A stretch of DNA of 64,000 bases from the NCBI GenBank assembly GCA_964036045.1, contig OZ038379.1, positions 32,798,001-32,862,000 of the forward strand. Direction: 5' to 3'. This document shows, piece after piece, positions 8,651 to 60,708 of the stretch. This DNA comes from Eutreptiella sp. 'Long Island Sound 2002' (Eukaryota; Protista; Euglenida). Made by a program: the position numbers and the translations under genes. The first letter of the stretch is position 1; each line of letters opens with the position of its first letter. The notes below the pieces were generated by a model. That model was not told the DNA's origin. It saw nothing but the letters and a program-made list of their open reading frames with translations, and searched no databases.

Positions 8651-9160
8651 GGCGGCTTCGCTGGTCCCCGGTATTTGTACTCGAGCCCCCCCCCCCCCCC
8701 CCCCCCCCCCCCGGGTGCCACCATCGGGCCCCGCCTCGTACATGGTATGCTAGGAAAAGAAGTGGCTTCTGTACCAAACGCCGTTCCCAACTAGCGTTCT
8801 CACCACCAATGAGCAAGAACAATAATGGTGAAGCATTGAACAAAAAGGATATTAGTTCGCTTCGAGAAAAAGTATCTATAGACCATGCCCCGGACAAGCC
8901 ACCTGAATCCGTGCGTTGCTCATCCCCACTGGAAAGCCAGAGGTTAGTCGCGCCGGCGGGACTCCACGGGTTCCTTTTCAAAGGGGGTGTGGGGTGTTGA
9001 CCTGCCTAAAGTAGGAAAAAAAGGACAAAGGAATTTTGCTTCGTGCGCCAGCAATATTGGAGGTTGGGGGGGGGGGTTGTTTCAATGTCCAGATAGGGAA
9101 ACATGTGTGGCCAGTGGTGACGCAAGCCGTTTTGAAAACGGGGCATGCCGGACGGCAACA

Positions 9161-9360
9161 NNNNNNNNNNNNNNNNNNNNNNNNNNNNNNNNNNNNNNNN
9201 NNNNNNNNNNNNNNNNNNNNNNNNNNNNNNNNNNNNNNNNNNNNNNNNNNNNNNNNNNNNNNNNNNNNNNNNNNNNNNNNNNNNNNNNNNNNNNNNNNNN
9301 NNNNNNNNNNNNNNNNNNNNNNNNNNNNNNNNNNNNNNNNNNNNNNNNNNNNNNNNNNNN
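9161..9360. other. Assembly gap (200 N) with a duplicated 134-bp overlap
   Basis: 9027-9160 is identical to 9361-9494. Confidence 0.95.
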
Positions 9361-10381
9361 AAAGGAATTTTGCTTCGTGCGCCAGCAATATTGGAGGTTG
9401 GGGGGGGGGGTTGTTTCAATGTCCAGATAGGGAAACATGTGTGGCCAGTGGTGACGCAAGCCGTTTTGAAAACGGGGCATGCCGGACGGCAACAACATCT
9501 ATTTACATGTCTGGTCAACTAGTCATAACAAGCAAAATGAAAATTCACATTGGGTCCACCAAGCAGCCTTTTCCGGGCTCCATGTGGCAGCGTGACTGGA
9601 CCCGGAGTCCGACCCCACATTGGAGGCACCTTTGGAGGAGAAAATTTACCCAAAAATTTCCGGGCTCCCAGGAACCATACAAAAAATTTCGCACCGATGT
9701 TGCACCATGCTACGTGGCGCCCAAACAGACCCGACAAGGAAAACTCGGGAGGAAATACCGTCGCTGCACCGCATGGTACGACTATATTCTGTGCTAGCCT
9801 CCAGGCTACATGTGTAAGGGTACGTGGTTAGTGTTATTTCTTGATGGGTCTTGGATGGTCGCAAATATTTCCTAATGGGTTCCCGAACGGACAGCACGAA
9901 GATTGCACGTATCAGCACAGGAGCCCTGTCCATAGTGTGTGCCTGCTTCATAGCAAAGAACAAGCAAAACAAATCTTCACGGGTGATAAAATTAGGGCGG
10001 CTGTACTTTAAATGTATTTCTTCCGTGTGTGGACATCGCGGCCAATCAATGTGATCAAATAACGGGCACAATCAGAGAGAAACAAAGCCGTGGACCATTC
10101 GTTTGCAAAGGCGGAGCCCAAGAATACTGCAATGGAACTTGGGACGGCAGCGACTCGGTGTCGCCAAGATCCTTAAGAAGCAGGGGGGGGGGGGGGGTTG
10201 CGGAGAGGTAACGCGGACAACCTGCCCCATTGGGCTGTTGTGGCTCGCTTAGAGTGTCCTTTTTCGGCAATATGCCCCGCCGCAAACGCGGCGGGAAGGC
10301 CAAGCGACGCCGCCGTGGTGGCCGCCGCCACCAATGGTCGGGGGCGGGCACCGCCCGCCGGCGCGCGAAGGCCCGCCAACA

Positions 10382-10406
10382 CTTAGGCGCCACAAGTTGC
10401 CCACCC
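10382..10406 (+). repeat. Left TIR of element A
   Basis: CTTAGGCGCCACAAGTTGCCCACCC; reverse complement of 16896-16920 with one mismatch. Confidence 0.95.
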
Positions 10407-10812
10407 CCCACCTGGCGCTATGGCCCACGGAAGTCCATGTTGTAATGAGGGGAAAAGTATGTGAAAAGGGGTGTTATTTTTTGGGTACCCAAACCCCCCT
10501 GGTGGCAACATGCAAAAACAAGGTGTGTATTTCAAATATATGCCATTATTTGCATTTCTGGAAACACACAGATTTTCAAAATAAAGACATTCAATCACCA
10601 AAATATAGTGTTGTTTTACATTTAGACCACTGCATTCCAGTGTGTGGGGGGGGGGGGGGGGGGGGGCTGCCTATTTTTCTCTCCCCTTTGTTCGAGGTTG
10701 ATCACAGAACCCCCCTATACACCACAGATGAGGGAACCCCAAACATACCTTTCATTGAAGCACACAAAAAACTATCCCAAAGCATGTACTTGTATTTCCT
10801 ATTTTAACCAAC

Positions 10813-11135
10813 CTGGCCGAAATCTCGGCCAGCTCTTCGAAAAAGTCCAAACACATGGTCCTATTTGACAGACAGGCCTAAGCTGGCCGAAATTTCGGCC
10901 AGGTCCATCGAAACTCCAAATATGATCACTGAAATGGGTACCTAAGACAGTAGACATGAGCAAGGAACACAGGAGCAGTGACATTTGAACAGGGTGTGCA
11001 ACATAATATACTCAATTACAAGCAAATACTTGCCACCTGACGAATCAAAGCAGACTTTTGCAGTGCCTATGGGGAAACACAATAATAAAAGGCTGAAGAG
11101 GCTGAGGACTGCATGCTGGCCGAAATTTCGGCCAG
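10813..11135. promoter_or_regulatory. Three 20-bp palindromes downstream of the accessory gene
   Basis: CTGGCCGAAATTTCGGCCAG at 10883 and 11116; one-mismatch copy at 10813; first two are 70 bp apart. Function unknown. Confidence 0.85.
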
Positions 11136-11174
11136 ACTTCATGCTGACAGGCAATATAAGCAGCACGACTGGCA

Positions 11175-13761
11175 TTAGCGCTTGCGCAGACCAGATGCAC
11201 GGGGCTTCTTAGCACCTGTGTTAGCAGGCTGCTTGGCAGGGGCTGCAGCACCAGACTTGGCAGTGGCAGAGTTCTGTGACTGTGTGTTTCCACCCTGGGA
11301 TGGTGAAAAATGATTCACAAAAGTATTCATACCTTTGCCAGTAGGGGCAACAGTGCCTGAGGAGGAAGCTGGGGTGGCCTGAGCGCACTGCGTGCCACTG
11401 GGTGAGGGGGCAGGGGCAGTTTTGGGTTTCTTCTTTGGAGTCTGTGTCTCTGGTTGCGACTCTGCCTCCCCATCTTGCTCCTCAGGATCCTCATCTACAT
11501 ACCTAACCCCAGAACAATCCACAGGAAAACCTGCCCCCAAGTCGTGGTACACATCCTCCCATGACTTGGGGGGGCACGTGTCGGCGTTGGTGATACCTGC
11601 TCTGATGAGCTGAACAAAGTCATCGGGCACAACAGTCTCCTCACCCAAAAGGGCACACACAACATTACAGTCCTTGGAAAACCTGGTAGACATCATGCTT
11701 GCAAAATACACAGACAGAGTCCCCAGCAAAAACCAGTTGCCTGCCCGTTCTGGGACCGGAACCAGGCTCAAAAGAAATGAGAATATTTCAACAGGCATCA
11801 CAGACGACATGGGTCCTTCAGTAAAAGCCACGTAACGGGGAAGCCCATTATCAAAGGCAGTAGCAGAACAAATGGAAACCAGATGGGACGTAGAAGTGTA
11901 CAGCGGGGTCTTGCTTGACAAATTGTAAAGTGCAACATCACACTGATACATATCCTCAGCCACAGTGGCCTTCAAAGCAGCAACAATGGCTTTCACATCA
12001 GCAGACTCACCCGCAATGAACACAGGCACACCGGACAAAAGCAGCTGCGCAACCAGGTTATGCAAACCAGCTGTATAGAGGCGGGGCACCTCAATGACAC
12101 AAGCAGCAAAGGGCAGTGAACTAATGATACTGGGAACAGGGACTCCACAACGCATTGCCATCAGTTCCACACGGCCTGACTTTGCAATGAGTTTGCCTGT
12201 GCTTGACTCAACGAGGGACTCCCTAGCACACTGGATACTGACCAGACCAGTATCAGATTTTTCACAAACAGGCTTAGCAACAGGCTTCTGCAACAATCCC
12301 CGCAACCCCTCATATTTGGGTTCCTTCCAAAGAGGGGCCTTAATTACTGCTGACCACGGGGGCCAGGGGTTTTCTTCAGTCCAGGTCCAACTGCCATAGG
12401 CTACCTTCAGGTGTGATGCAATAGCGCACTGCCTTTTGGCCATCTCGATAGTACCAAGTGTAGCTGCAGACAGGTGGTAGCACAGGGTGGGCTCCTATTG
12501 TGCATTAATTGAACGACACACAAGCTGGCCGAAATTTCGGCCAGGTCGGTCGATTTATTCGAATACAAACCCCTGTTTGACCAAAACATACCTCTGGTGT
12601 TGTTCACAAGCCCATTGGTAGCCGCCTCGGGATGAAGAATGTGCCAGGACCACATCTGGGCCTTTTTAACATCTTTTATAATTTTTTGAGACCAGGTAGG
12701 GTACTTTTTGTCCCATCCATGTAACCTACGATCTCGCGAAGTCGGTCAGGCGTGATGCCTTCCACTTCCTTGAACGTACCCAGTGCGGGATGTAGTCCAC
12801 GCTTTTCCATGGCTGCCATGGCGTCTACTGAAGGAAGACCCACAAATTTCACCAAACGCCCAACGCCACCCCACCGTTTGGCAACAGCACTCTGCACAGG
12901 AGAACATGTGGAACACAGAAGCTGGCCGAAATTTCGGCCAGGTCGATCGACAAAACCGAATTAATAAATGAAACACACCACAGTGCCTTCCTCGGCAGTA
13001 ACACCACACTCTTCAAGCATAACAGTAATGTGATGGTACAGGGTGTACTCATTGGCATCCTCATCCTCAAGCCTATCCAGGAGTAGGGACATTCGCTCCG
13101 ATGTGGTGGATGCTGAGCCGGCAGTGGTCTGGATTTGATGTAAGCCTGCAAGCCGGCGCCTAGTCCGCAGGGGGCAGTCCTGTTTGACTTCATAACCACC
13201 AAATACCAGGGTCCAATCCGGAGTCTCCATATTTTTCATCTCAAATTCGGTCTTGTGTTTTTGGGCAGCAGTGTAAACATGCTGACCCCCCAAAAGAACC
13301 CAGCGAGTGGCTGTGCAACAGGAATATTCGTAACAGCAGGGTCGAAAATTCAGACGCGAAAACGGTACTATCGAGAAGAATACCACAACACACATACGAG
13401 TGACTTTATAAAAAAGAAGATCCTGGATGTAATCCACAGGCGGGGCTGCCTTCAGATCGTCGTAGCGACGTTGCACGCGATCATCCGAAATCCTACGGAC
13501 CTGCCCAAATTTTCGGTCGTGGTCGATAATAATCTGATCCCACCGAACCTTTATTTTCGTCGTTGACGTAACCCAGTCGGATAACTTGATGGAGGATGAT
13601 GAATTTTTCTTTGGTGCGGCCTTAGGCTTCTTTTGAAGTCCCTCTGTGCTCGCCTGGTCCTCTTGAGACTGGGATTGCACTTGAGATTGCCCATTGTCTG
13701 CTGCAGGCTCACCATCTGGCGAAACAGCCATGTCCTGCGATACCCCTCCAGGCTCAGTCAT
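11175..13761 (-). CDS. Accessory gene of element A: four exons, about 761 aa, N-terminal ParB/Sulfiredoxin-like domain, C-terminal alpha/beta domain and a basic tail
   Basis: Exons 13761-13398, 13310-12979, 12891-12592 and 12463-11175, joined by GT-AG introns 13311-13397 (87 nt), 12892-12978 (87 nt) and 12464-12591 (128 nt). All phases match if one A is restored in the A6 run at 12682-12687 (LKKIIKDVKK). ParB-like signature GQVRRISDDRVQRRYDDLKAAPP...WVLLGGQHVYTAAQK. Domain call is by eye. Confidence 0.75.
12525..12544. promoter_or_regulatory. 20-bp palindrome inside intron 3 of the accessory gene
   Basis: Perfect CTGGCCGAAATTTCGGCCAG within intron 12464-12591. Confidence 0.9.
12922..12941. 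promoter_or_regulatory. 20-bp palindrome inside intron 2 of the accessory gene
   Basis: Perfect CTGGCCGAAATTTCGGCCAG within intron 12892-12978. Confidence 0.9.
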
Positions 13762-13880
13762 AAAATAAAGGGCTACAAGGCAACATTTCATGAAGGGGAG
13801 AGTTCCCAGATAGCAAATAACAAGCACAGATCAACCAAAAAAGGACCAAAACGGACTGCCTGACAGGAAATTCGGATAAC

Positions 13881-14039
13881 CTGGCCGAAATTTCGGCCAG
13901 CACTGCTCTGCATGTCAAACCACTGTGTACAAATACCATTCTGAGAGGCTGGCCGAAATTTCGGCCAGAACCTTAAGTCATTTGTTTTCTGGGGCTAGCC
14001 ATATGACAAAACAACAAGTCTGGCCGAAATTTCGGCCAG
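13881..14039. promoter_or_regulatory. Intergenic array of three 20-bp palindromes
   Basis: Perfect copies at 13881, 13949 and 14020 (periods 68, 71) between the transposase stop and the accessory-gene start. Confidence 0.9.
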
Positions 14040-14131
14040 AAAAACATGAAACAGCAAATAGACACACCAAAATCACTGGCAATGCGTGGCAGAACCCATA
14101 CCACAGTGACAAACACAGCTGCAAACAGAAA

Positions 14132-16343
14132 TCAGTCCCAATCCTGGGTATCCACACCGATGTGTTCCGCCTCATCTAGGGCTTCAAAGGAGGCAACGCT
14201 GTCTGCATCACAATCAATATCCTGGTCACTATCACAAGAGTCGACAGCAATGGAATCATCAAGGGCGGGGGGGGGTACTGGGCGGGGGGGGGGGCGGGGG
14301 GGGTACTGGGGGGCCTCTGGCTCGGGGCTTCGGGGGTGGCTTTGGGGGCAAGGCAATTCCACCAGGAGCAGCAGCAGCAGCAGCAGGCGGTGCACGGTTG
14401 GCAGCGCGAATAGAAGCATGTGCAGTACGCAACACCCCTTGCTCGGCAGCAGTGCGGGCAGGTGCATTTGTCTGTAAAAAATCCTCAACACCCTCAGGAA
14501 CCCTGGTACGTGCAACCAGATTTTGCATTGCATGCAACAGAACCACTTTTAAACGGTCTGTGGTGATTCGTGTCCTGGACATGGTACCGGGGAACGTCAA
14601 ATCCTCAACTGCATCCAGTCTTCTCACCTCAACTTTATAGTCCGGAACGGGAACACAAATGGGCAGGCTCTGTGTATGGGCTGTCAAGATGAATTGTTTA
14701 AGATTGGCAGAGAACATTGCCACGGATCTCTCAGTCAGCACACCACGCAAAACTTTCTCTCCGGGTTGGACAGGGGGAAGTATCAGAAATAAATCAGACG
14801 ACTGTTGGACACTAGTACAGGCCGTGTTGCGGCGACAGTGGGCTGAGAACCGACTCAGAAGTGCCTCACCCAGCTCCTCAGAGTGGATACACCCTAGGGA
14901 GGCGGAATGCCACTGACTCCAAAACAAAAGAGCAACAGCGGTGGTTTTCACGTACTCCGTGGTTAACTGTTCCTCGGGCTTTAGGATGTTCAGCATGAGC
15001 AGTAGGGACATCTCAAGTGCCTGCTTAGCTACAATACCGGAACCTGCCCCCCGTCCCTCCCAGTTGCACTCACGAACCAAAGTCCCAATGCTGAAAGCAG
15101 CTGGACAGTATGTGTACAGCAAAGCCTTAAGGGCTAATAACATACGCAAACCCTTGCGCTGAATGGGTGTCAAGTCCCGCTGGCTATTGAGCACGGAAGT
15201 GACGCGCTCATCTAGTCTGCCTCTATTGGACGATGTGGCTAGCATGAGTCCAAGCAACGTCTTCTCCATATGGATGACCTTGACCTTGCGAGGGAGGATA
15301 GACCCAACCTGAAGGCTGTTCCCCTGCTCCAAAAACTTAATGAACGGCAGGAACGCCCTGTAGATCAATTCAACGCAATACTTATAGCTATGCCATACTC
15401 CGTACACCAAAGGAAAACCCAACAGTAATTGTGGTACATTCCAGGGAACATAAGCAGCACCATAACACAGCTTAAGTAGGGCAAAGTGTATTTTCATGTC
15501 CACAAGCAACGGAACACAGTGTCTGGTGCGGTGTTCCACACATGACAAATCAACCACGAGTTGCAAAAGCTCTTTGTGTGTGCCGGAGCGGAGCTCAGAC
15601 AGGAAAAAGGGTCTCCAGTTGAGGGAACGAACATCTTTTCTGGCAATATCCAAAGGAGCACGAACCCAAACTCTCTGAATACCTTGGTTGGCAACATCAA
15701 TACGATCAAACAATGCTCTATGTGAGCGAAAGATGTCATCAGCAACCTTTGGTACCCTGGCCTCAATTTCGGCCAGCTCCGGCAGACCCCGGTATGCAGG
15801 TAGGGCAGTAGTGTGCAAAACAGCAACAGCTGTACAGTTTAGGGTTAAGTCGGGTGAATGGGGATCAGCTCCCGACCTGTAACGCCTCAGGTTATCAAAC
15901 CATATACAAACTTGCCTACGGTGCATGGTGTTCCACAAGTTGTGTGCTGCTAGTCCAGCACGATGGTGAATGGACTCCTGCTTAGTGTTACACTGACCAA
16001 GGACTCCTACCTTACGGCGTTGGCGGCAGGACATAATACCCCAGTTGTAACCAGACCCCCAGTTAGAGTATGGGAGGGCCATACGGCGCAGCAGGCAGTA
16101 TAGGGCATGGAACTGTGACAAAAACGTCATGTACCATCGTGGGGGCTTCTTCTCAGTGGCGGCGGCCTTCAACTGTGTCAGGGAGTGCCGGCTCCTGCGA
16201 TTCTTCCGCAACAAGAGGCAGAATTGCAAAAGCTTTTGCAGAGTCCCACCACGTAATGCATTTCGCAACAGCCCTTTGGCTGTAGTAGCAAAAGCACCAG
16301 TAACTGCAGCATGTACAACATTGACAGTAATAGCAGAAGACAT
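14132..16343 (-). CDS. DDE transposase, distantly Transib/RAG1-like (RNase H fold)
   Basis: 694-aa ORF 14259-16343, with an acidic tail continuing to the 14132 stop after a frameshift in the G-runs at about 14265-14310. Candidate triad D150 (IWFDN), D282 (LVDMK), E493 (HSEELGEA, cf. Transib SEEAxEA); conserved H318 (YGVWH). Lies inside TIRs with a 5-bp TSD. Splice-acceptor-like cttgtctcag just upstream of the ATG. Confidence 0.8.
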
Positions 16344-16414
16344 TAATGCTGAGACAAGAAAACAGTTATGTAGGAGTGTATGGTGTAATACTCATGAACA
16401 ACGACAATTGCAAG

Positions 16415-16715
16415 CTGGCCGAGATTTCGGCCAGGTGTGTTCAAAGGGGAAATAATTGCTTACATGTTCAAAAATAGGAAAAGCTGGCCGAAATTTCGGC
16501 CAGCCCACCCAAAAACCAGAATATAAGTGCTTGAATAGTGAACAGACCAAAAAGCTGGCCGAAATTTCGGCCAGCCCTAAGAAAAATGAAAATAATCATG
16601 CCTATTCACCAAGAAACCAAAAAGCTGGCCGAAATTTCGGCCAGAAGGGTCAAAAACTGCATATACACATAGTTGTTTGCAACGTTACCCAAAACCTGGC
16701 CGAAATTTCGGCCAG
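16415..16715. promoter_or_regulatory. Subterminal array of five 20-bp palindromes with unique 49-51-bp spacers
   Basis: Starts 16415 (one mismatch), 16484, 16555, 16625, 16696; periods 69, 71, 70, 71. Confidence 0.9.
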
Positions 16716-16895
16716 CTTCAGAAAAACGTCAAATACAACACACTAGAAGACGGGGATACACAAGGCTAACACATCAACACGTATTTCAACGGGTGTCACA
16801 CAGCTCTGCCAACAACTTTGGTCACATACGTCAAACAACATACTCAAAGTAGAAATGTAGAATATTGTCAAATCGCGCGTATACGGGGTCCTAGA

Positions 16896-16920
16896 GGGTG
16901 GGCAACTTGTGACGCCTAAG
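16896..16920 (-). repeat. Right TIR of element A
   Basis: GGGTGGGCAACTTGTGACGCCTAAG followed by CAACA. Confidence 0.95.
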
Positions 16921-18169
16921 CAACACCAAGGCTAGGTCATGACCGGTCACCTAGCGGGGTGGCTAGTCCGCAACCTCTGGTTGGGCGCCCAGGGCCGGCT
17001 AGTTTTCCAGCGACCTTGCGCACAGCCAGAGGCAGGTGCCCTACTTGCGGCGGCCGCCGCCGCGGATCTAGTACGCCGGCTGCACAGCCAACCCACGCAA
17101 GTACGCACCCCTGAAGGCAAGCCGGAGGTCAAAAACGGACTTCCCGGGCGATCTATACGAGCACCCATGGCGCGTGCACTGCAACGGCCTCGTGCCAACC
17201 CTGGCCTTGTCCCAGCACAGGCGAATCAGCGGACAAGCTCTCCTGTATGTGTGGGTCAAGGGCTCACCGCATCTAGCACGGTGCATTGTGCGCCTCTTCC
17301 GGCCCCTGTGAGCGGCCAACATATCCGCCTGTGGTTCCTAGGGACCTTGCCGGTCACTGCCTCGCTTCACGCTGACCTCGCCGGCCGGAGTTTAGGGGGG
17401 GGGGGGACTGGCCTGTTGCCCCCTTGTTGATGACTATAATGTGATCCGGCCTGTAGGTGTTGAGTTGTGTAGGCCATGCATCGCTTTGGGTGCGCTGCAC
17501 TTCCTCTAGCCGTGGCTTCCCTAGGTTCTGCCCAGTTGACCGTTTTTATTTTGTATCTTTTCCCTTCTCTGTTGGGGTTTCTTTGGCGCTCCGTCTCTGT
17601 TGGTATTTACCCTGTGCGTGTAGCGCGCCGGGCATGGGTTACATGCACTGCAGATGGAGAGGGTGGGGTTGTGGCATTCCGACTGTAGCGAGTGGATGGA
17701 TGTGGGTGGGTGGGGGGGGGGGCGGGCACTGATTTCGGCATTCGGCGTTTGCCTGCAGCCGTGGTTTCCGCTACCACTCACCCTGCATCCGCAAGAGGGC
17801 GAGTCCAGGGCGAAGAATGAATTGTCAACTTTGGTTGCAGTATTCTTGTGCTCCGCCTTTGCACAAACTAGTTGAGCCTCGCCTCAACTTTTGTTTGCAC
17901 CTCCATACTTAGGCACTTTTTCTATTTTCTCCCGCCCCCCCCCCCCTGTGGTTGTGCCGTACCAAGCTTGCGAGCCGCACCGCAGAGCAGCATCCGTCCT
18001 TGTGAAACTAGTCATCCCGCGTGGTTCAAGACTGCCCTAACCGTGTTGCAGCAAGGCTTTAGGTGTATTGGTTCTGGGTCCGTAATAGTGTGGGGTCTCT
18101 GATGGTTGCGGAGAGGAAGATACCGCACCCGTCCACACTATCACCGGTACCGGTTGCGTAGACACACAA

Positions 18170-32199: not shown

Positions 32200-33360
32200 T
32201 TCTCCTTGAAATACAAGATAGCCGAAAAAACAACCACAGCAACTTCAAGAACTGAGCCGTTTCCCAGGATTAATTAGCAAATCAAATACCCCCCCAAAAG
32301 CTCCGCCAAATGCCCCCAAAGTGGACCGGTGCTGTTGTGGAACCCCTTGACTTACCCAGTCTAAGTTTGAGGCCTTTTGCCCTTCAACGGCCACCCCTTA
32401 GCGAGCATAGAGAGCACACGACATCCCAAAAGAGCACCGGTAACTCCAAGAAAATGAGCCATTTCCGAAGATCCAATCAGCAAATCCCCCCCGCGCACCC
32501 GAAAAAAAACCCAAGATGCCCCCGAAATGGACCGGTGCTGTTGTGGAACCCCCCACATTACCCATGCCAGCCCGGCCGGTGCACCAAAGGTCTAAGTCTG
32601 AGATCTTTTGCCCTTCAACAGCCGCCCCCTAGCGAGCAGAGAGAGCACAAGACATCCCAAACACCCCAGCAGCTTCAAGAACTGAGCTGTTTCCTTTCCT
32701 ATCAACAATTTAAATACCCCCCACAAAGCCCCCCAAATGCCCCCAAAATGGACTGGTGTTGTTGTGGAACGCCCCCACTTACATATGCCAGCCAAGCCAG
32801 TGCATCAAAGCTCTGAGGCCTTGTGTCCTTCAACGGCCGCCCCCTAGCGAGCACAGAGAGCAAAAGACATCCCAAAACAACCCGATCAGCTTCAACAACT
32901 GAGTCGTTTCCCAAAAACTAATCACCAAATCAAAGACCCCCCAAAAGCCCCCCAAATAACCCCAAATTGGACCCGTGTGGTTGTGGAACCCTTTGACTTA
33001 CCCATGCCGGCCCGGCCAAGTGCATCAAAAGTCTAAGTCTGGGGCCTTTTGCCCTTCAACGGCCACCACCTAGCGAGCATAGAGAGCACAAGACATCCCA
33101 AAAAAAAAAACCCAACAGCTCCAAGAAATTGAGCCGTTTCCCAAGATCCAATCCACAATTTAAATACCCCAAACCCCCCATCCCAAATGCCCCCCAAATG
33201 GACCGGTGCTGCTGTGGAACCCCCGGACTTACCCATGCCACCCCGGCCTCTACATGAACGGTCTAAGTCTGAAACTATTTGCCCTTCAACGGCTTCCCCC
33301 TAGCAAGCAGAAAGAGCACAAGACATCCCGAAACAACCACACTAGCTCCAAGAGCTGTGT
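32200..33360. repeat. About five tandem copies of a 206-231-bp unit
   Basis: GGACCGGTGCTGTTGTGGAACCCC recurs at about 32323, 32529, 32750, 32969 and 33200. Confidence 0.9.
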
Positions 33361-49399: not shown

Positions 49400-49900
49400 G
49401 AGCACCGTGGCCTCCCCCGTTGGCCGATCCTCCCTAGCAGCAACCACCGGCACGGCGAGGCTACCTGTCTCCCACTATCCGGAGAATCCGCAGCCGGAGG
49501 ACTTTGGAATTCCCTCGCTGGCCACTCCTCCCGAGCAGTGACCACTGGCACAGCAAGACGACTTGTCTCCTCATGGCCGGTGAACCCGCATCTGGAGTAA
49601 CCGTGGCCTCCCCCAAGTAGCAACCACTGGCACGGCGAGGCTACGCGTCTCCCCGTGGCCGGTGAACCCGCAGCTAGAGGACTTAGGACTTCCCCCATTG
49701 GCCACTCCTCTTTAGCAACGACCACCTACACGGCGAGGCTACCCATTTCCCCCTGGCCGGTGAACCCACAGCCAGAAGAACCATGGCCTCCCACATTGGC
49801 CGATCCTCCCGAGCAGCGACCACCGGCACGGCAAGGCCTCCCCTCTCCCCGTGGCCCGTGAACCCGCACATGGAAGGACCATGGGCTCCCCCGTTGGGCG
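49400..49900. repeat. Degenerate 80-100-bp tandem repeat
   Basis: GGCACGGCGAGGCTAC...TCTCCCC.TGGCCGGTGAACCCGCA recurs about six times. Confidence 0.8.
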
Positions 49901-49904
49901 ATCC

Positions 49905-50690
49905 TACCCACCTCCCCGAGGCGGTGTGGCAGTGTGCACCAGGAGTTCCACTGCCCACTGCCCCAAGGCTGTGCGGCAGGGTATTGCACCAGTTCCACTT
50001 CCCACTGTCCCCAAGCAGTGCGGCAGTGTATTGCAAGACTTGCATTACCCACTGCCCCCGGCAATGAGACAATGTGTGGAAGGAGATCTACTGCCCACTA
50101 CCCCCGGGGAGTGTGGCAGTGTGTAGGAGGAGATCCACTGGCCACTGTCCCCGAGCAGTGTCGCACTGTGCAGCGGCTTCCAATGCCCACTACCCCCGGG
50201 TAGTTGGGCAATGTGCCGCAAGTGTTCCAGTACCCACTGCCCCAAAGCAGTGCGGCACATAATTGCCGGAGTCCCATTGCCCATTGCCCCCAGGCAGTGA
50301 GGCGGTGTAATGCAATAGTTCCACTGCCCATTGCGCTAGGGTCATGTGGCAGTGTGCGCCAAGAGGTCGCGGCCCACGGCCCCGAGACCGGCCACGAGTG
50401 TGTAGCAGGAGTTCCACTGCCCACTGTCCCAGGGCAGTGGTGCAGTGTGTAGTAACAATTCCACTACCCACTGCCACCAAGCTGTGTGCCAGTGTGTAGC
50501 AAGAGTTCCATTGTCCACTGCCCCAAGGTAGTGCGGCAGTGTGTGGTAGGAGTCCCACTACCCACTACCTCCAAGGATACGGCAGTGTGTTGCAGGAGTT
50601 CCACTACCCGGTGTCCCAGGGCGGTGTGGCAGTGTGTGGCAGCAACTCTAGTGTGTGGCAACAGCTCCGTTGCCCACTGCCAACAAGCTA
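49905..50690 (-). repeat. 45-47-bp satellite, reverse orientation
   Basis: GGAGTTCCACTGCCCACTGCCCC units, the reverse complement of the 52030-59002 arrays. Confidence 0.9.
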
Positions 50691-51486
50691 TGTAAGGCAT
50701 GGCTGGCTGGGCAGCAGCACTTGCAAAGGCTGATCTCCAAGAGTGCCCGCATGAGCGACAATAATTATGAAGGGCACAGGGATACTTGTGCTTTCACTTG
50801 ATGTGGGGTGGCTGGGTGGGTGGGGGGGGGGGGTTGAACCATAAGGGGAGCAAACTTGTCGGCAAGGTCCCATGGTGTTGTGTTTTGATGGAGAAAGACC
50901 TCCGCTTCATGATGTGTGTGATGTGGAGGCTGACCCTCGGCAAAGTTCGAATTCACCACTCAGCACTGCCATGGCGGGGGGCGAGGAGATGTTGGGGTCA
51001 CAGATGGTGGCTCCCAGATCCCAGGGTCCCAGGTCCCGTTCGGCTTAGTCATTACAGCCCGCCGCGAGCATATTCAGGTTGAGCTCAAGTGTACCCTGTA
51101 ATTGTACGACGTCTTGTTCCATTATACCCACCCGATCACTGCGTTGACCAGTGGTTTTTGGCGCATTTCATGCAATACACAAACGTGCCCAATGCTAGCC
51201 TGCCCTTTTCCTATCGGGGGCCCTCCTCGAAGAAGTGGGTTTTATTAGGGGGCTCTTGACCCAAAACTTATCAGGGGACACGACGCACCAGGATGCCAAA
51301 ATCGCAGGGCAGGAGGGTTGGGGGGGGGGGGGGGCACCGACAGGGCACCTGGTTGTGGCTCCGATGTGTCCCGTGCCAGCCGAGGCACCATTGGACGCTC
51401 AACCAGGAGGTTCTCCGCACTAACGGTGGGAAAATACGTTTCTACATGCACTCGTCAGGCATACGTGAGCCAAGGCCAAGTCACAG

Positions 51487-51572
51487 GTGGAACTGGTCCT
51501 TGACTTTTACTTCCTTTGCGATGCTACAAGCCCCAAAACAAGGGCTGTTTTGGCGAGTGTGGCCATGAAAAA
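51487..51572 (+). CDS. Candidate short exon of an unidentified plus-strand gene
   Basis: cacag|GTG...AAAAA|gtaagc, 86 nt (VELVLDFYFLCDATSPKTRAVLASVAMK); phase-compatible with a possible exon from 51687 (RLVRDIDRLLTQTLLLASQ). Confidence 0.35.
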
Positions 51573-52029
51573 GTAAGCACAGGTACTCCAGCTGGTGCTA
51601 CATCGCACAGGTACTCCAGCTGGTGCTACAGCAAATAGAACTCTTCTAGGGGCCTGCAAAGTTGTTGGGTGCTATGCACCACCTAGGCGTCTCGTGAGAG
51701 ATATCGATCGGTTATTGACGCAGACCTTGCTTTTGGCTTCTCAGAGTGCATTGGTTGTGCTGTGGTGTGGTGTGGCATGCCGAGGGCGCTGTTACCGGAA
51801 GGCAAAGGCTGGGATGTCTTGCTTACAGGCATACTAAAATGGGCAGGGGTGTGTGCGCGTGCGCGCTCTGTGTGGCCCGAGCGGCAACTGGGTTCGCCCC
51901 TTCGTCTGATGATCTCTGTCCATGGATGTTCTCGGGACTCCCTGCCGCTCCACTCGCCGGAGCCATTGCAGCTCCCGCAGGGCCGTCACCATGGTGCCCC
52001 CGGGTCCTACTGGGGCCTTGCACACTCCC

Positions 52030-53838
52030 TCACTAACTTGTGGCAGCGGGCAGAGGAGCTCATGCATCTCACTGCAGCAGTGCCCTGAGGCAGCGGGCAG
52101 TGGGTCTTCTGTTGCATTGTGCCTCATGCCTCGGGGCAGCGGGCCGGGGATCTCCTGCTTCTCACGGCCACACTGCCTGGGGCAGCGGGCAGTGGATCTC
52201 CTGCAACACACCGCCGCACGAACTGGGGGCAGCAAGCGGTGGAGGTCCTGCGGCACACTACCTCACTGCCTGCAACCAGTGGGCAATGGGACGCCTTCGG
52301 TGCACTGCCTCATTGCCTGGGGGCAGCGGGCAGTGGAACTCGTGCATTACACCGCCGCATTGCCTGGCGGCAGTGGGCCATGGATCTCCTGCAATGCACT
52401 GCCACACTGCCCGGGGGCAATGGGCAGTGGAACTCTTGCATTGCATTGCACTACATTGCCGCACTTCGTGAGGGTAGTGGGCAGTGAAACACCTAAAACA
52501 CCCTGCCACAGTGCTTGGGGGCCGCGGGCAGTGGAACTCCTGCAATACATCGCCGCACCGCCTGGGGGTAGTCAGCAATGGAATTCTTCCATTACACTGG
52601 TGCACTGCCTGGGAGCAGTGGGCCATGGAACTCGTGCTACGAATTGCCGCACTCTCGTGGGGCAGTGGGCAGTGGAATTGCTGCAATACACCGTTGCAAT
52701 GATTGGGGGCGGTAGGCAGTGGAAAACCTACTGCAGACGGCCTCACTGCCTGGGGGCAATGGGCAGTGAGCTCCTGCAATGCAACGCCGCACTGCGTGGG
52801 GGCAGTGGGCGGTGGGGCTCTTGCATTACACTACATTACACTACCGCATTGCCTTGGGGCAGCGGGCATTGGGACTCTTGCGTTACATTGCATTACACTG
52901 CCGCATTACATGTGGGTAGCAGGCAGTGGAACTCATGCAATACACCGCCGCACTGCCCGGGGCTAGTCGGCATAGGAACTCACTCCGGCAATACACCACC
53001 GCACTGCTTGGGGACAGTGGGCTGTGGAAATCCTGCATTGCACCGCGGCACCACCTTGGGGCCGTGGTCAGTGCAACTCCTGCCACACACTGCCGCAACG
53101 CATTTCGCCGGTGGGCACTGAAAATCGTGCACTACACCGCCGCAATGCCTTGGGGCAGCGGGCAGTGGAACGCCCGCAACACATTCCTGCAGTGTCGTGG
53201 AGCTGTGGACAGTGGAACTCCGGCATCAAACCGCGGCACTGCCTGTGGGCATTGTGCAGTGGAAGTCGTGCCACATAGTGCCTCGCTGCCTTGGGGCAAT
53301 GGGCAGTGCAACGCTTGCTGCAGTGGAATTCCTGCCTAAATCGGTTTCTGCACAGTGCCAGACTGTCCTGGGGTAGACTATCTTGGGGCAGGGGGCAATG
53401 GGCCTGCTCCACAATGCCGAATTGCCTCGGGGGCAATGGGCACTGGAACTCATCTGGAACACCGCCGCAGTGCCTGGGTGCAGTGGGCATCGGTACCCGT
53501 GCCAAACATTGCCACACTGCTTGGGGGCAGCAGACAGGAGAACTCCTGCTGCACAGCCCGGGGGCAGTAGGCAGTGGAACTTCTGCCGCACACTGCTGCA
53601 ATGCTTTGAGGCAGTGCACCGTGGAACTCCTGCTGCACGCTGCCTCACTGCGCGGGTAGGACATCTGCTGCCACACAATGCCGCAAGGGCTCAGGGCAGT
53701 GGGCAGTTACACTCTTGCCGCACACTGCCAGACTGCTTTCGGGCAGTGGACAATGGAACTCTTGTCGCACACTGCCACACTGCCTTAGGGCAATGGGCAG
53801 TGAAAAACCTACTACAGTGAAACTCCTACCTCACTGCT
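52030..53838 (+). repeat. 45-47-bp satellite (GGGCAGTGGGCAGTGGAACTCC...CACACTGCCGCACTGCC)
   Basis: Dozens of degenerate tandem units. Confidence 0.95.
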
Positions 53839-53843
53839 CCAGG

Positions 53844-55045
53844 TTAGGGTTAGGGTCACCGAGCTGGTGGAACCAGTCTTGGTTTTATAACCCTTTTTAG
53901 TGTCTAGGGTGGACCTACTAGGTTTAGCAGCAAGCAAGCAAGCAAGCAGCAAGCAGCACGCGCGAAATGGCTAAAATCAGAACTCCGTCGTGGTGCTTCA
54001 GATTCAGGTGAAATTTTGGTGGATGATACCTATGGGTGTGAAGTACAATCACACAAAGTTTGAGCAAGAAACTCAACGGTGGCGGCCAGGAACGGGCTTC
54101 GCAAAAGGCGGACCTCAGTTTCAAAAACTGCAGTTTAGGGCCAAAAATAGCCATTTTTGGGCCAAAAAAGCCCTGGAACACATTCAAAACGGCCAAACGA
54201 AGGGAAACGGTGGGTACACTCCACGTGCGGCTTGACTTCCCCGTGTCAACGAGCTCTTTGCGGCCCTCTAACTCAATGATATGTCCGGGAAACGGCCCAA
54301 AAAGGCCCCCAGAAGCTCCAAATGCCGACAGCCACAAACCAAGAATAGGCCATATCTTTGGCTACATGGCTCAAAATGCGATTCCGAGGGCACCTACTCC
54401 ACCCGCAACCCCCCACTTTTTGTGGTTTCCACCCCTCAAAATTGCCCAAACGGACGCCTAGACCCCCCGTACCCAGGCCCACTAGGCTGCGGCAAGCTGC
54501 AAGCTCAAGCCCAAACAGGTGGGTGCCCAAATGGGTCAATAGGGTCCAGTAGGGGCAAAAAGATGACTTTTCTCAAAAATGATCCTAGACCATGTGCGAC
54601 GCTAAAAACAAGTGTTTTTGGACCGTTTTCAGGTGGTGGTGGCCCATTTTGGTCCTCCGAAAATCCCAAAAGGCCTTGAAAATGGGCTATTTTGGGACCA
54701 AAAATGGGTCAAAAATGGGTCAAAAACGCATTTTTCCAAACCTCATCCTAGACCATTTGGGGTGCACAAACGGGTGAAATGAGCCCACTTTGAGCCCATT
54801 TTGAGCCCATTTTGGGGTATTTTGGCCCCTCAGAAGTCCAATTTGGGGTATTTTGGCCCCTCAGAAGTCCAAAAAGCCTTGAAAGTGGGCCTCGTGGTGA
54901 TGGGGTTCACTTGCAAGCTGATTTCACTTTGTCAAGAGCCATCAATGTGTGAATCATTCTTGATGTCCCTCACCAGTCATAGCTGATGTTTCCTCCCCCA
55001 CCAGCTCGGTCCCAATATTCAGTCTTGATTAGGGTTAGGGTTAGG
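53844..55045. mobile_element. 1.2-kb non-coding insertion in the satellite, with 13-bp inverted repeats and flanking TTAGGG tracts
   Basis: ACCGAGCTGGTGG at 53858-53870 and its reverse complement at 54998-55010; (TTAGGG)2 at 53844-53855 and (TTAGGG)2TTAGG at 55029-55045; internal tandem duplications. Confidence 0.6.
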
Positions 55046-58000
55046 ACAGAGGGCAGTGGAACTCTAGCTGCACTCTGTCTTGTCTTCGGTCACTAGGTAG
55101 TTGGGCTCGTGCTGCACAGTGCCCCACTGCATGGCGGCAGTGGGCAATGGATCTCCTGCCACATACCACCACAGTGCCCGGGGACAATGGGCAATGGAAC
55201 TCAAGCGGACCATTGCCACATTGCCTTGTCGCAGTGGGCAGTAGAGCTGCTGCAATGCACCGCTGTTTTGTCTGCTAGTGGGCAGTTAGAAACCTGCGAC
55301 ACGTTGCCGCACTGCCTTGGGGCAGTGAGAAGTGGAACTCCTACTGCACACTGCGACGCTACCGAGGGGCAGTGGGCAGTGGGACTCCTACTACACACTG
55401 CCGCACTGCCCCGGGGCAATGGGCAGTGAAACTTGTGCCGCACACTGGTACACTGCCTTGGAGCAGTGGGCAGTGGAACTCCTGCAATGCAATGCGAGAC
55501 CGCCTCGGGGCAATGGGCAGTGGAACTCCTACTGCACACTGCCGCACTGCCTTGGGGCAACGGGCAGTGGAACTCCTGCCCCACACTGCCACACCCCGGG
55601 GGCAGCGGGCAGTGGAACTCCGGCATCACACTGCCACACAGCCCCAAGGCGGTGGGCAATGGAACTCCTGCAACACACCGGTGCGCTTCTTGGGGGCAGC
55701 GGGAAGTGGATCTCATGCCGCGTACTGCCCACTGCCTTGGGGCAGTGGGCAGTGGACCTCCTATTGCACCCTGCCACATTGCGTGGGGGCAGTGGGCAGT
55801 GGAACTGTTGCTGCACACCGCCACACTACCCGGGGTTAGTGGGCATTTGAACTTGTGTTGCACCCTACCACACCACCCGGGGACAGTGGGCAGTGGAGCA
55901 GCTGCTGCACAGTACCCGACTGCATGGGGGCAGCGGGCCCTAGATTTGTTGCCACACAGTGCTGCACTGGCTCGGGGAAGTGGGCAATGGATATTTAGCC
56001 GCACACCGCTGCATTGCCCTGGGATAGCGGGTAGTGAATCTCCTATTGCACTGGAAGGTGAAACCCTTGCTGTACACCGCCACACTGGACGGCATGTGCA
56101 GTGAGGCTCCGGCAGCACACACAGGCTGCACACAGGCTACACACTAGCCGCCTTGCCTTGGGTCAGTGGACAGAGGGTCTCTTGCAGCACGCTGCCCCAG
56201 TGCATGGGGGCAGTGGGCACTGGGACTCTTGCCACACGGTGCTTGGGGGCACTTGGAAGTCGGACTCCTGCTGCAAACTCCACACTGTCCTGGTACTGGG
56301 GAGTGGAAGTCATACAATACGCTGCTGTAGTGCTTTGGCGCACTCGACAATGGGAATCCCGCAATACAATGCCGCAACATCTAGGGGCCGTGGGCCGTGG
56401 AACTCTTGCTGCACACTACCAAACTGCCTAGGGGTATTGGGCAGTGGAACTCTTACAACACATTGCCGCACTACCCCGGAGCCGTGGGCAGTGGAGCTTG
56501 TGCACTACATTGCCGCGGTGCTTGGGGACAGTGGGCGGTGGAGTTCCTGCAATGCACCATCGCATTGCCTCAGGGCACCGCGGCGTGGAACTTGTGCAAA
56601 ACAATGTGTCCCGGCCTAGGGACAATAGGCAGTACAACACTTGTTGAAACACTGCCATAGTGCTTTGTGGCAGTCGGCGGTGGAGCTGCTACAATACACT
56701 GACTGCCGCATTGTCTCTGGGCAGTGAGCAACGGAAATCCGGCTGCACACTGGCACGCTACCCGGGGGCATTGCGCAGTGGAATTTCTGCTGCACAGTGC
56801 CACACTACACGGTGAAAGTGTGCAATGGAGCTCGTGCAATGCAATGCCGCACTGCCTAAGGGCAGTGGCCAATGGGCCTCCCGCAATACACCACCGCTCA
56901 GCCTGCGGGCAGTGGGCAGTGGGACTCTTGCCACACACTGCCGCACTATGTTGGGGCAGCACGCAGTGGAACACGTGCTGCACACTGCCACAATGCCCCG
57001 GGGGACTGGGCAATGGAACTATTTCTGCACACTGCCCCAAGGGAGTGCGGCAGTGGGCAGTGGCACTCCTACCAGACACTGCCGCACAGCCTGCGGGGAG
57101 TGGGCAGTGGGACTCCTGCCACAAACTGCCGGACTCCCTTGGGGCAGTGGGCAGTGGAACACCTGCGGACTGCCTAGGGGCACTAGGCAAGGGGCCTCTC
57201 GCAATACATTGCCGCTCTTCCGGAGGTGAGCGAGCAGTGGGACTCTTGCCACACACTGCCACACTACTCTCGCAATACACCGCCGCCCTTCCTCTAGGCA
57301 ATAGGCATAGGGAGTCCTGTCACACACGGCTGCACTGCTTTTGGGTAGTGAGAAGTGGAAATTATGCTACAAATTGTCACACTGCCCTGGGGGAGTGGGC
57401 AGTGGAACTCAGGCTGCACGTTGTTGCACTGTCTTCGGGTAGTGGGCAATGGAACTCCCGCAATACATCGCCGCCATGCTTGCGGCCAGTGGGTTGTGGA
57501 ACTGGTGCAATACACCGCCGCATCGCCTAGGGATATTGGGCAGTGGATGACTTGCCACACACTGCCATGGGACAGTTGAGTTTCTGCAATATATTGCCTG
57601 GGGGCAGTGGGCAGTGGGACTCCCGCCACACAGTGCCGCGATGCCTTGGGGTAGTCGGCAAGTGAACTCCTACCTCACGCTACCGCACTGCCTTGGAGCA
57701 TTGGGCATTGGAACTCCTTGTGCTCACTGCCACACTGCCCCTAGGCAGTGGGCAATGGGACTCATGCAATACACTCCCGCACTGCCTAGGGCAGTGGGCA
57801 ATGGCTCTCTTGCAGTACAATACCGCGGGACCTGGGCACAGTGGCCAATCGCACTCCTACAATACACCGCCACATTGCCTAGGGGCAGTGGGCCATGGGC
57901 CTCCTGCAATACACCGCCGCTCTGCCTGCGGGCTGTGGGCACATGGACTCCTACCACACACTGCCGCATTGCTTTTTGGTAGTGAGCAATGGAACTCCTC

Positions 58001-59002
58001 ATGCACAGTGCCACTGCATGGGGGCAGTGGGCACTGGAACTCCTCCTGCGTAGTGCCATATTGCCGCAGGGGACTGGGAAGTGCAACTCTTGCCGCACCG
58101 CCTTGGGGCAACGGGCAATGGGGCTCCCGCAACACACCGCCGTGTTGCCAGGGGGCACTGGGATGTGGAACCAATGCAATGCAACACCGCATTGCCCATG
58201 GGTATTGGGCAGTTGATGACCTACCACACTCTCCCGTTATTGCAACCGTGGAGCTCTTGCAATACAGTGCGGCACCGCCTGGGGGAGATGGGCAATGGGA
58301 ATCCCTTAACACATCGCCGGTGCGCCTGGAGACTGTAGCTAGTGGAACTCTTGCGGTGCACTACCTCATTCAGGAGGTTCCTCATTCCACTCCCCACAGA
58401 CTCCACGTGGTATGGTAGTGTGCATCTACAATTGCACTGCCCACTCGCCCAAGGCAGTGCGGCAATATGTAGCAGGAGTCCCAGTGCCCACTACCCGCAG
58501 GCACAGCGGCAGCGTATTGTGGGGGGCCGATTGCCCACTGTCCCTTGGCAGTGCGGCATTGTATTGCAAAAGATGTACTGCCCACTGTCCCCGGGTGGTT
58601 TTGTATTGTGCTCAAACCATTCCACTTCCCAATGTGCCACAATGGCAGGGCGGTTTGTGGCAGCAGTTCGACTGCCCACTGCCCCGGAGTAGTGTGGCGG
58701 CGTGTAGCAAGACGTCCATTGCCCATTGGCCCAAGGCAGTGCGGCACTATGAGGCGGGAGTGCCCTTGCCCGGTGTTCCACACATTGCCGCCCTGCTTTG
58801 GGATAGCGGATAGTGGCACTTCTGCGTCACACTGCCGCACTACCCAATGGGCCGTGGAACTGTTGCCATACACTACGGCGCTACCCTGGGACATTGAGCA
58901 GTGGAACTCTTCCAGACACCGCCTGGGGAAAGTGGGCAGTGGAGCTCCTACGACATACTGCCGCACTGCCTAGGGGCAGTAGACAATGGGCCCTCCGCAA
59001 TA
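55046..59002 (+). repeat. 45-47-bp satellite with an internal inverted block at about 58420-58770
   Basis: Same unit as 52030-53838; orientation flips and then reverts. Confidence 0.95.
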
Positions 59003-59435
59003 CTTAGGCCACACTAACTGCCCACCCCCCTACCCACAGGCTGGGCTCCACGGGGCCATCCTGTACCTCCCCCCCCCAAAAAAACAGGGTATGAATTTTG
59101 CACCTAGGGGACCCCTTGCTCTTGAGAGGAAAAAATGAGTATCTCTATTTACCTAAAATGCCATTGTCATGTAACCACATTGTAGTTGTTAAAACACAAT
59201 AAGCATGTATGCATACTGGAAAAGCAGAGGAAGAATGCATGTTTCAGCAATACAACAAACCTTTCGGTGTTACACACAAATGTATCAACCTGCGAAGCAA
59301 TGAAGTGTAAAAAGTAGGGCGGCACACACTTGGCAAGGGTTGCTGCACCCTGTGTGTGCCCAAAAAACTGTCAATTGACAGTCACTCAAATCCATGCATC
59401 ATAATCAAGGTCTCTATTTGCCATTAATGAGACCT

Positions 59436-59524
59436 CTGGGCGAAATTTAGTCCAGCTTTGCAAAAATGTAAAAACGAACCGTGTATACCAAGAAATACCT
59501 GAACCTGGGCGAAATTTCTTCCAG
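59436..59524. promoter_or_regulatory. Two decayed variant palindromes of element B
   Basis: CTGGGCGAAATTTAGTCCAG at 59436 and CTGGGCGAAATTTCTTCCAG at 59505; period 69. Confidence 0.8.
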
Positions 59525-59653
59525 CTTTAGTAAAACACAAAAAAGCATTGCTCAAGACGTCAATGGTATCTGCAGAGACAGCGCACAACCCCATTGTGAC
59601 GTGTAACAGGGAAACCATACAACACAGCAGTCACAGCACACACCACTGTCACT

Positions 59654-60708
59654 CTATCGCCGCTTCCTCAGGCCGGGTGCCTTTGGTTTGGCACCCTTAC
59701 CAGGAAACTGCCCACCATATGCCTGTCCTGCCTTGTCACCAGACATCTCACTGTTAGCATTACCAGTGGCACCACGTCCATTCATGGGCACCACAGCTCC
59801 AGCCTTCAGGTCCCAACCCTGCTCAAGAAATTTAATAATAGGGGCAAATGCCTTGTAGGTTATTGCCATAGAATACTTATATGGGTGCCAGACACCGTAA
59901 AGCAAGGGGTGTCACAACAGGAACTTGTCTACGTGCCACGGGGCATAGCTTGCTCCGAACCACATTTTCAGGAGTGCGTAAAAGATCTTCATGTCAATCA
60001 GAAATGGCACAGTCCGTCTCGTCTTCACCTACAAGCATTCTAGCCCCCTGAGAAACACCAGTAACTCAACATGACTTCCGCATTTCAGGTGTGATAACAG
60101 AAAGGGCCTCCAGTTGAGGGATACCACAGCATTGCGAGCATAGTCCAGAGGTGCACGAACCCAGGTCCGCAGAACAGGCCCATCTGGGACGGTACCGCCC
60201 TGCAACAGCAACCCAACAGAGCAAACTAGGTAGTCGACAACCCCGGGTATACATTGTGCACACCATCCAAACCGGGCAGACCGTGGTACTGGGGCAGCGC
60301 AGTAGTGTGCAACACACCGACAGCAGTCACATTCAAAGTCTTATCAGGGCTATGGGGGTCGACCCCATTGGTGTAGCGACGGTAATTGTCGAACCACGGG
60401 GTAATTTGCTGTCTCTCAAATGAATCCCGCAGGTGTGAAGCTTGAACACTGGCCTGGGCCGAGATAGTAAGGGCATTGATAGTGCATTCCCGTGCCATTG
60501 CCAGCTTACGGCGGATGGACTGGGTCATTGTACCGCGATATGAGGCTCCAGTGGCTCTCTCAGCACGGGGATATGTCAGCACTCGCACAATGTTATAAAG
60601 TGAGAAAACTTGCTTCTGCACGACCAACAACCGTCTTGGTACACGACTAGAACTGAAGGCAGCCCGCACATACCCAACATTACGTCTAGTCTTTCTATTG
60701 TGACGCAA
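59654..60708 (-). pseudogene. Truncated transposase of element B, fused to the 3' end of the accessory gene
   Basis: WFDNYRRY, DPHSPDKTLNVTAVGVLHTTALP, VRAPLD, LNWRPF, IDMKI, YGVWHPYK and IKFLEQG all match element A; stops and a frameshift present; ends KGAKPKAPGLRKRR*, cf. GAKKPRASGLRKR* of the accessory gene in A. Confidence 0.9.

Follow-up and report, generated by a model that had tools for sequence, protein, structure and literature searches.

A 64,000-nucleotide stretch of the Eutreptiella sp. 'Long Island Sound 2002' genome (contig OZ038379.1, positions 32,798,001 to 32,862,000; hereafter the window) contains a two-gene DNA transposon of about 6.5 kb, element A, whose non-coding DNA holds many copies of one 20-bp palindrome, CTGGCCGAAATTTCGGCCAG. 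We propose that the element itself encodes a sequence-specific DNA-binding protein, probably active as a dimer and most likely the product of its second gene, for which these palindromes serve as recognition sites. Judging from the sequence, we put the probability of this reading at roughly 0.55; we infer both the identity of the binding protein and what its binding would achieve.

Our motif search of the window recovered eleven perfect copies of CTGGCCGAAATTTCGGCCAG, starting at positions 10883, 11116, 12525, 12922, 13881, 13949, 14020, 16484, 16555, 16625 and 16696, and two copies with a single mismatch, at 10813 and 16415. This census, with every copy inside element A, and the spacings between neighbouring copies (70; 68 and 71; 69, 71, 70 and 71 bp) agree exactly with the first-pass annotation of this DNA, whose list lacked one further copy: a degenerate palindrome with two mismatches at 15757-15776, within the gene-1 reading frame and present at the same position in two other copies of the element (L001 and L009). 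Counting this fourteenth copy, the sites extend from 10813 to 16715. By chance only 0.01 copies would be expected, and none of 100 shuffled sequences reached 18 matches with up to three mismatches allowed. The window copy and L001 are near-identical, and between them every one of the 13 good positions is represented by a perfect palindrome.

As far as we scanned, the motif is also restricted to element copies within this genome. Neither the window nor about 80 kb of sequence at other loci of this assembly has CTGGCCGAAATTTCGGCCAG outside them; the remaining near matches in the window all lie in a second, related insertion, element B, whose sites differ from CTGGCCGAAATTTCGGCCAG by three mismatches and from a variant, CTGGGCGAAATTTCGCCCAG, by one to three. 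Beyond the transposon family, the exact 20-mer occurs as 26 scattered singletons, never clustered, in 241 million metagenome records and as 11 scattered singletons in 596 Gb of prokaryotic genomes, with zero occurrences in IMG/VR.

Element A spans positions 10382-16920, with both genes on the minus strand. A second copy in the same assembly (L001:7422-13958) is 98.5% identical to it over window positions 10382-16922 and unrelated beyond. The element is bounded by 25-nt terminal inverted repeats (TIRs) at 10382-10406 (plus strand) and 16896-16920 (minus strand), which are 96% complementary, and is flanked by a 5-bp target-site duplication (TSD), CAACA, at 10377-10381 and 16921-16925 (no strand assigned). 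Duplications of 5 bp flank five insertions of element A and related lineages (CAACA, ATATG at L001, CAATA, TCATT and TATGT), and a sixth insertion has a 5-bp duplication with one mismatch. The 25-nt terminal repeat is retained in the lineages of element B and L006, with five or six changes per 25 positions. By these features, element A is a cut-and-paste DNA transposon, and protein clusters of 90 to 267 members, all from one ENA assembly, indicate that its family numbers hundreds of copies in that assembly. A further pair of 38-nt inverted repeats (87%; 10104-10141 and 17826-17863) brackets element A at unequal distances, and the element may be nested within another TIR-bearing element.

Mapping the palindromes onto the two genes placed copies upstream, between and downstream of the genes and in introns 2 and 3, as had been annotated. 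Five sites (16415, 16484, 16555, 16625 and 16696; no strand is assigned to any palindrome) form an upstream array at 16415-16715, which stops 72 nt short of the start codon of gene 1 and is separated from the right end of the element by 205 nt. Three sites (13881, 13949 and 14020) form an intergenic array at 13881-14039, past the gene-1 stop codon; the nearest of them lies 120 nt upstream of the gene-2 start. Another three (10813, 10883 and 11116) occupy positions 10813-11135, 3' of the gene-2 stop, the first of them at a distance of 431 nt from the left end. None of the 13 good sites falls in coding sequence, though non-coding DNA makes up only about 35% of element A, a distribution with a chance probability of about 1e-6.

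Comparison of copies supports selection on the palindromes at the level of DNA sequence. Between the subfamily of element A and a sister subfamily represented by L010, palindrome positions are 93% identical (205 of 220), compared with 76% for other non-coding positions and 77% for coding positions. In young copies this difference is absent: palindromes and the remaining sequence are 98.5% and 98.3% identical in L001, and 94.4% and 93.9% identical in L009. Neutral decay in young copies, together with 93% conservation between subfamilies, is consistent with selection that acts on active lineages rather than on dead copies.

The history of the arrays bears on the strength of this constraint. The first-pass annotation took the spacers between sites to be unrelated and excluded simple tandem amplification; for the upstream array this needs correcting. 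There, adjacent spacers show 44-54% in-register identity over 48 nt, against 27 +/- 6% in shuffles, and Tandem Repeats Finder reports a 71-nt period with 2.4 copies and 80% matches. By this evidence the upstream array is an old tandem duplication. Since its spacers have decayed while the 20-mers stayed perfect, the case for constraint becomes stronger. Elsewhere in the element, the units at 10880-10911, 12522-12553 and 12919-12950 share about 12 more bases past the palindrome (of the type GTC-N2-TCGA), including a second small palindrome; these extra bases could be part of a composite site or a trace of unit duplication.

Palindromes accompany the transposase gene in its relatives as well. We compared five related lineages from at least three samples, in which the gene-1 homologue is 30-46% identical to that of element A; each repeats a palindrome of its own, placed in compartments that match those of element A. 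The closest, comprising L002 and element B (46%), has palindromes resembling CTGGGCGAAATTTCGCCCAG, spaced 69, 112, 69 and 68 bp apart. L006, from the same genome (33%), has GTGCTGG-NN-CCAGCAC, with 17 matches against 0.9 expected: five sites lie upstream of gene 1, one between the genes and three downstream, and further copies sit at positions equivalent to introns 1 and 3. The remaining three lineages each come from another sample. L003 (about 32%) has TTCGCTCCA half-sites in both orientations, 69, 78 and 69 bp apart, upstream of gene 1, and in addition one full palindrome. L007 (31%), an element bounded by 28-nt inverted repeats, has 22 copies of TTTCGTAAC-N-GTTACGAAA in arrays that flank gene 1 at a spacing of 23-29 bp; a short run of CCCTAA-type, telomere-like repeats also lies within it (L007:1402-1443). 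L008 (30%) has 14 copies of TTGCGCGC-NNNN-GCGCGCAA, four of them inside gene 1. Full palindromes in transposase coding sequence (four at L008:1238-1937 and one at L007:6115-6137) mean that exclusion from coding DNA is not absolute. Site spacings in the relatives are 18-29 or 55-160 bp, which rules out the approximately 70-bp period as a fixed structural requirement. Across these sequences, the palindrome system is a hallmark of the transposon family, and the approximately 70-bp period is lineage-specific.

Non-autonomous derivatives keep their sites. Element B (59003-61396, minus strand; TSD CAATA) is an internally deleted copy of the L002 type, in which a gene-1 fragment survives and gene 2 is absent. 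It has six decayed variant palindromes, at 59436, 59505, 60922, 61034, 61103 and 61171, and retains both end arrays. More generally, the sites persist or have multiplied in the shortened non-autonomous copies L009, element B and L010, the last of which holds 27 in 3.6 kb. From element A to element B, the change in the palindrome is symmetric.

Three lineages within one genome (element A, L002/element B and L006) have three different palindromes. We considered that a host transcription factor might read the palindromes as parts of promoters or enhancers, and arrays indeed lie directly upstream of both start codons (at 72 and 120 nt) and precede gene 1 in L003, L006 and L007 as well. Against this, the sites also occur in introns and downstream of the last gene, there is no copy outside element copies in the window or in the roughly 80 kb of other same-assembly loci, and the palindromes differ between lineages that share one genome. 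Because co-resident lineages use different palindromes, we rejected a host factor, now a very improbable reader, and favour a reader encoded by the element.

Gene 1 (14259-16343, minus strand, 694 codons) encodes a putative DDE transposase, as judged from its relatives, their invariant residues and its predicted fold. It has no family match in Pfam, NCBIfam or PHROG, and neither single-sequence nor profile searches found a sequence match among solved structures. Its relatives form 977 clusters at 50% identity, whose full-length members are about 30% identical. In 39 diverse members, the invariant residues are D150, N151, R228, P230, D232, R235, D282, W317, H318, E360 and a C-terminal group comprising E489, E490 and E493. 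In the predicted structure, which is confident (predicted local distance difference test score, pLDDT, 89), about 140 helical residues at the N terminus precede the catalytic core. The closest folds are those of the Hermes (hAT), P-element, Transib, RAG1 and ISCth4 transposases and, among viral proteins, of a Pandoravirus hAT-family protein. All of these matches are weak, with E values of 0.008-0.6 (0.02-0.6 for Hermes, P-element and Transib) and template modelling (TM) scores of about 0.2-0.3. The features of DDE (RNase H-fold) cut-and-paste elements are all found, namely TIRs, a TSD of fixed length and invariant acidic residues on a predicted RNase H-like core. Overall, the model points to a putative DDE-type transposase with a helical insertion domain, outside all public domain libraries.

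Members of the hAT superfamily generate 8-bp TSDs, and Transib elements 5-bp TSDs. The evidence speaks against hAT membership for gene 1, given the absence of any Pfam match in the 39 members, the hAT C-terminal dimerisation domain included, the 5-bp TSD in five insertions and the weak fold likeness to Hermes (E 0.02, TM 0.25-0.31). For a Transib- or RAG1-like assignment the 5-bp TSD is present, HzTransib and RAG1 emerge as weak fold matches (E 0.24-0.66) and a sequence-family match was not obtained. Membership in either hAT or Transib is not supported.

Comparison of the window copy of gene 1 with L001 reveals two frame-changing length differences, and either copy may be the intact one. Homopolymer runs of G or C, 13-27 bases long, are frequent in this genome (8686-8712, 10183-10197, 10646-10666, 14263-14311 and elsewhere); one of them lies in the 3' part of gene 1, and such runs are prone to assembly length errors.

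Gene 2 (11175-13761, minus strand) is a multi-exon partner gene, recognised as open exon blocks that are conserved in L002, L006, L007 and L008. In order of transcription, these blocks lie at about 13398-13761, 12988-13310, 12679-12891, a short block near 12584-12690, and 11175-12495. Three short introns read from the sequence between them, all on the minus strand, are of the GT-AG type, as in the host, and each contains a palindrome or what is left of one. Intron 1 (13311-13397; 87 nt, GT-AG, in frame) has a decayed remnant near 13340-13351; the weak trace annotated near 13341 is real, and at the same intron position the sister subfamily still has a palindrome with one mismatch. Intron 2 (12892-12987; about 96 nt, GT-AG) holds the palindrome at 12922-12941, and intron 3 (12496-12583; about 88 nt, GTATGT...AG) holds that at 12525-12544; each fills a gap between conserved exon blocks. 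In the L007 relative, which is without intron 1, the first two exon blocks are contiguous.

We searched the gene-2 exons one by one and built local profiles from natural exon pieces, for searching only. A gene-2 homologue follows the gene-1 homologue in L006 and in L002, and the local profile search identified one in L008 (downstream, on the same strand) and one in L007 (divergent from gene 1). In L002, gene 2 is split by a nested Mutator-like insertion (L002:10800-15200; weak PF10551 match), whose private 11-nt motif, GCGTAAGTCGC, recurs at the two ends of the insertion and nowhere else in it. At every locus with enough flanking sequence, gene 2 is present together with gene 1 and the palindromes, and it looks like a constant partner of this transposase family.

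The first-pass annotation regarded the second protein as ParB-like, which our searches did not establish. Neither the individual exons, the unspliced reading frame nor the relatives of gene 2 match a Pfam, NCBIfam or PHROG family, and the N-terminal ParB-type domain PF02195 in particular has no match in any exon, in the unspliced frame or in the L007 relative. The 422-residue C-terminal exon has no match in Pfam, NCBIfam, PHROG or PDB, and a tblastn search of plasmids and phages with the intron-free L007 relative returned nothing. The best solved-structure matches of that relative are five sulfiredoxin sequences, aligned to residues 238-305 with E values of 0.34-1.1. Sulfiredoxin shares the nucleotide-binding fold of ParB (PMC12704722), and we treat the ParB/sulfiredoxin reading of gene 2 as a lead suggested by this sequence match. 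An ATPase partner of the ParA type is absent: element A has two genes only, neither of which matches an ATPase family.

Taken together, these results suggest a model in which the gene-2 protein would find palindromes in every non-coding compartment and so mark or coat copies of its own element along their whole length. The likeliest outcomes of such binding would be self-directed control of the element's chromatin or expression, comparable to the action of VANC proteins in Arabidopsis VANDAL elements or to that proposed for the ParB-like accessory proteins of algal transposons, help in recognising the substrate for transposition, or both. The earlier suggestion that the palindromes are sites for a dimeric, element-encoded protein is borne out in that they belong to the family, show selection on their DNA sequence and differ from lineage to lineage along with the element; binding itself is what we infer from the sequence. 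Several observations weigh against this model. Family-library scans recognised no DNA-binding domain in the gene-1 or gene-2 protein, the sulfiredoxin match is sub-threshold (E 0.34) and was not reproduced when a multi-lineage gene-2 profile was searched against solved structures, and the predicted structure of the gene-2 N-terminal reading frame (pLDDT 38) is unusable. Symmetric changes between lineages would be expected of hairpins no less than of dimer sites, and fixed array-to-end distances and the survival of arrays in deletion derivatives would fit binding by the transposase equally well.

The transposase is a serious rival reader, if in our judgement an unlikely one. Subterminal repeats serve as transposase sites in hAT, Mutator and En/Spm elements, and the palindromes could be subterminal and internal sites for the gene-1 protein that aid the recognition and pairing of ends. 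The distances from the outermost sites to the element ends are nearly identical in two lineages (431 and 205 nt in element A, 433 and 206 nt in element B), internally deleted copies retain both end arrays, the predicted helical N-terminal region of about 140 residues could bind DNA, and the best fold matches of gene 1 include Hermes bound to its transposon ends. However, half of the sites lie far from the ends, between genes and in introns, and the Mutator-like element nested in L002 displays the usual pattern, with repeats at its two ends only. This whole-element, intron-inclusive spread is unlike that of ordinary subterminal transposase sites and favours gene 2 as the reader, as does its presence beside gene 1 and the palindromes wherever enough flank is available. 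Moreover, lineages with different palindromes have kept the same terminal repeats, with few changes, which suggests that ends and palindromes are read by separate modules or proteins.

Hairpin function and selfish spread are weaker rivals. As hairpins or cruciforms in single-stranded DNA or transcripts, the palindromes might be processing signals, sources of small RNAs or recombination structures, which we consider quite improbable. The 20-mer does fold into an 8-9-bp stem with a 4-nt loop (-9 to -12 kcal/mol; z score -5 to -6), the symmetric change between elements A and B would keep the stem, and the central one to four bases vary freely in L007 and L008, as a loop might. But the isolated half-sites of L003, in both orientations, are unable to form hairpins, no transcription is expected ahead of the first gene, where many of the sites are found, and the window contains no match to an Rfam family. 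Least probable of all is that the palindrome units are small selfish insertions or duplications within the element, perhaps creating short introns, that do not serve it: three units (10880, 12522 and 12919) share about 32 nt beyond chance, a unit, or the remnant of one, sits in each of the three approximately 90-nt introns, intron 1 is missing from the L007 relative and the upstream array arose by tandem duplication, but such spread leaves unexplained both the 93% versus 76% conservation between subfamilies and the lineage-specific palindrome at equivalent positions in L006, and neither the window nor about 80 kb from other loci showed a solitary unit apart from element copies.

Binding of the palindromes by an element-encoded protein has parallels among algal transposons. 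In red algae, Plavaka transposons were described in 2025 with a ParB-like accessory protein, PAG3, beside tandem arrays of inverted repeats, and proteins of this type have been proposed to bind their own element (bioRxiv 10.1101/2025.02.11.637652). A Sola1 element of the brown alga Ectocarpus encodes a ParB-like/DNA-methyltransferase protein (bioRxiv 10.1101/2025.02.11.637652; PMC12477816). Like these PAG3 systems, element A is a eukaryotic DNA transposon with a non-transposase gene and arrays of inverted repeats, here with three sites ahead of gene 2, another three behind it and two or three within its introns, and the N-terminal region of gene 2 gives a weak hint of a ParB/sulfiredoxin-type domain. 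Unlike them, with their fusion of a ParB-like domain to a 2-oxoglutarate oxygenase or DNA methyltransferase domain, it has no detectable oxygenase or methyltransferase domain in its proteins and no match to the Pfam ParB model, and its transposase family is without a Pfam model and makes a 5-bp TSD. Its sites also extend beyond the flank of the accessory gene, to introns and to both ends, and gene 2 appears to be a constant partner rather than a captured mobile cassette.

Another parallel is provided by the VANC anti-silencing proteins of Arabidopsis VANDAL (Mutator) elements, whose targets form tandem repeats that differ between related elements (PMC5735166). DNA methylation is lost at such an element when its protein is present. 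As in those elements, the motifs of the present family are short, occur throughout the element's non-coding DNA, are often tandem and different between relatives, and co-vary with the element protein. The two differ in that we found no sequence relationship and in that the motifs of this family are palindromes of 16-20 bp.

In bacterial and plasmid ParB-parS systems, ParB loads and slides on DNA in a CTP-dependent manner. With these systems element A shares clustered, element-specific palindromes of about 16-20 bp (13 copies confined to the element) and a candidate reader with a weak match to sulfiredoxin's ParB-type fold. It differs in being a nuclear eukaryotic transposon with introns, and in having no ParA partner, no recognisable helix-turn-helix and no Pfam ParB match. 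The parS-like system proposed in the first-pass annotation therefore holds in part: clustered, element-specific palindromes are present and algal transposons offer a published precedent (bioRxiv 10.1101/2025.02.11.637652), whereas a ParA partner is missing and the approximately 70-bp period is not general. In a bolder version, which we regard as doubtful, element A would represent a hitherto undescribed two-gene eukaryotic transposon superfamily whose constant partner protein is a diverged clamp of the ParB/sulfiredoxin fold. Loading on palindromes throughout the element, those in introns among them, the clamp would label copies of its own element, a form of parS/ParB-like self-recognition in eukaryotic chromatin, with a specificity that re-evolves in each lineage and site units that may have seeded short introns.

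Among better-known transposons, En/Spm (through TnpA), Ac/Ds and Hermes have subterminal binding motifs, and PIF/Harbinger elements have a two-gene design. Element A resembles this group in pairing a transposase with a second, here putative, DNA binder, and in end motifs that are retained by non-autonomous derivatives. It differs in its long, perfect palindromes, in their intergenic and intronic placement, and in its TIRs, TSD length and both proteins. Set against public domain libraries rather than curated transposon libraries, what appears new relative to these precedents is the transposase family, the 5-bp TSD, a partner without a recognisable enzyme domain, the constant gene pairing and the intronic sites.

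Elsewhere in the window, a run of 200 N at 9161-9360 lies between two identical 134-nt stretches (9027-9160 and 9361-9494) and most likely marks a gap in the assembly, one edge of which was duplicated, rather than a biological feature. A degenerate satellite with a 47-nt unit that includes an inverted repeat (CCACTGCC...GGCAGTGG) occupies about 49900-58300 and 61400-62460, and element B is inserted in it. Two further, unrelated tandem arrays lie at 32359-33357 (231-nt period, 4.4 copies) and 63154-63850 (50-nt period, 14 copies). Pfam searches with ten more of the window's long reading frames gave no informative match.

A transposon that has its own reader and many targets can tell its own copies from host DNA. 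To our knowledge, transposons with their own reader and many target copies are known experimentally only for the plant VANC proteins, with the algal ParB-like proteins proposed in 2025. The present family is an unusually clean case: perfect 20-bp palindromes that avoid the coding sequence of element A, sites kept in introns and six lineages with six palindromes make the co-evolution of a reader and its sites directly readable from sequence. The analysis also exposes a large transposase family, of about 1000 clusters, for which public domain libraries have no entry.

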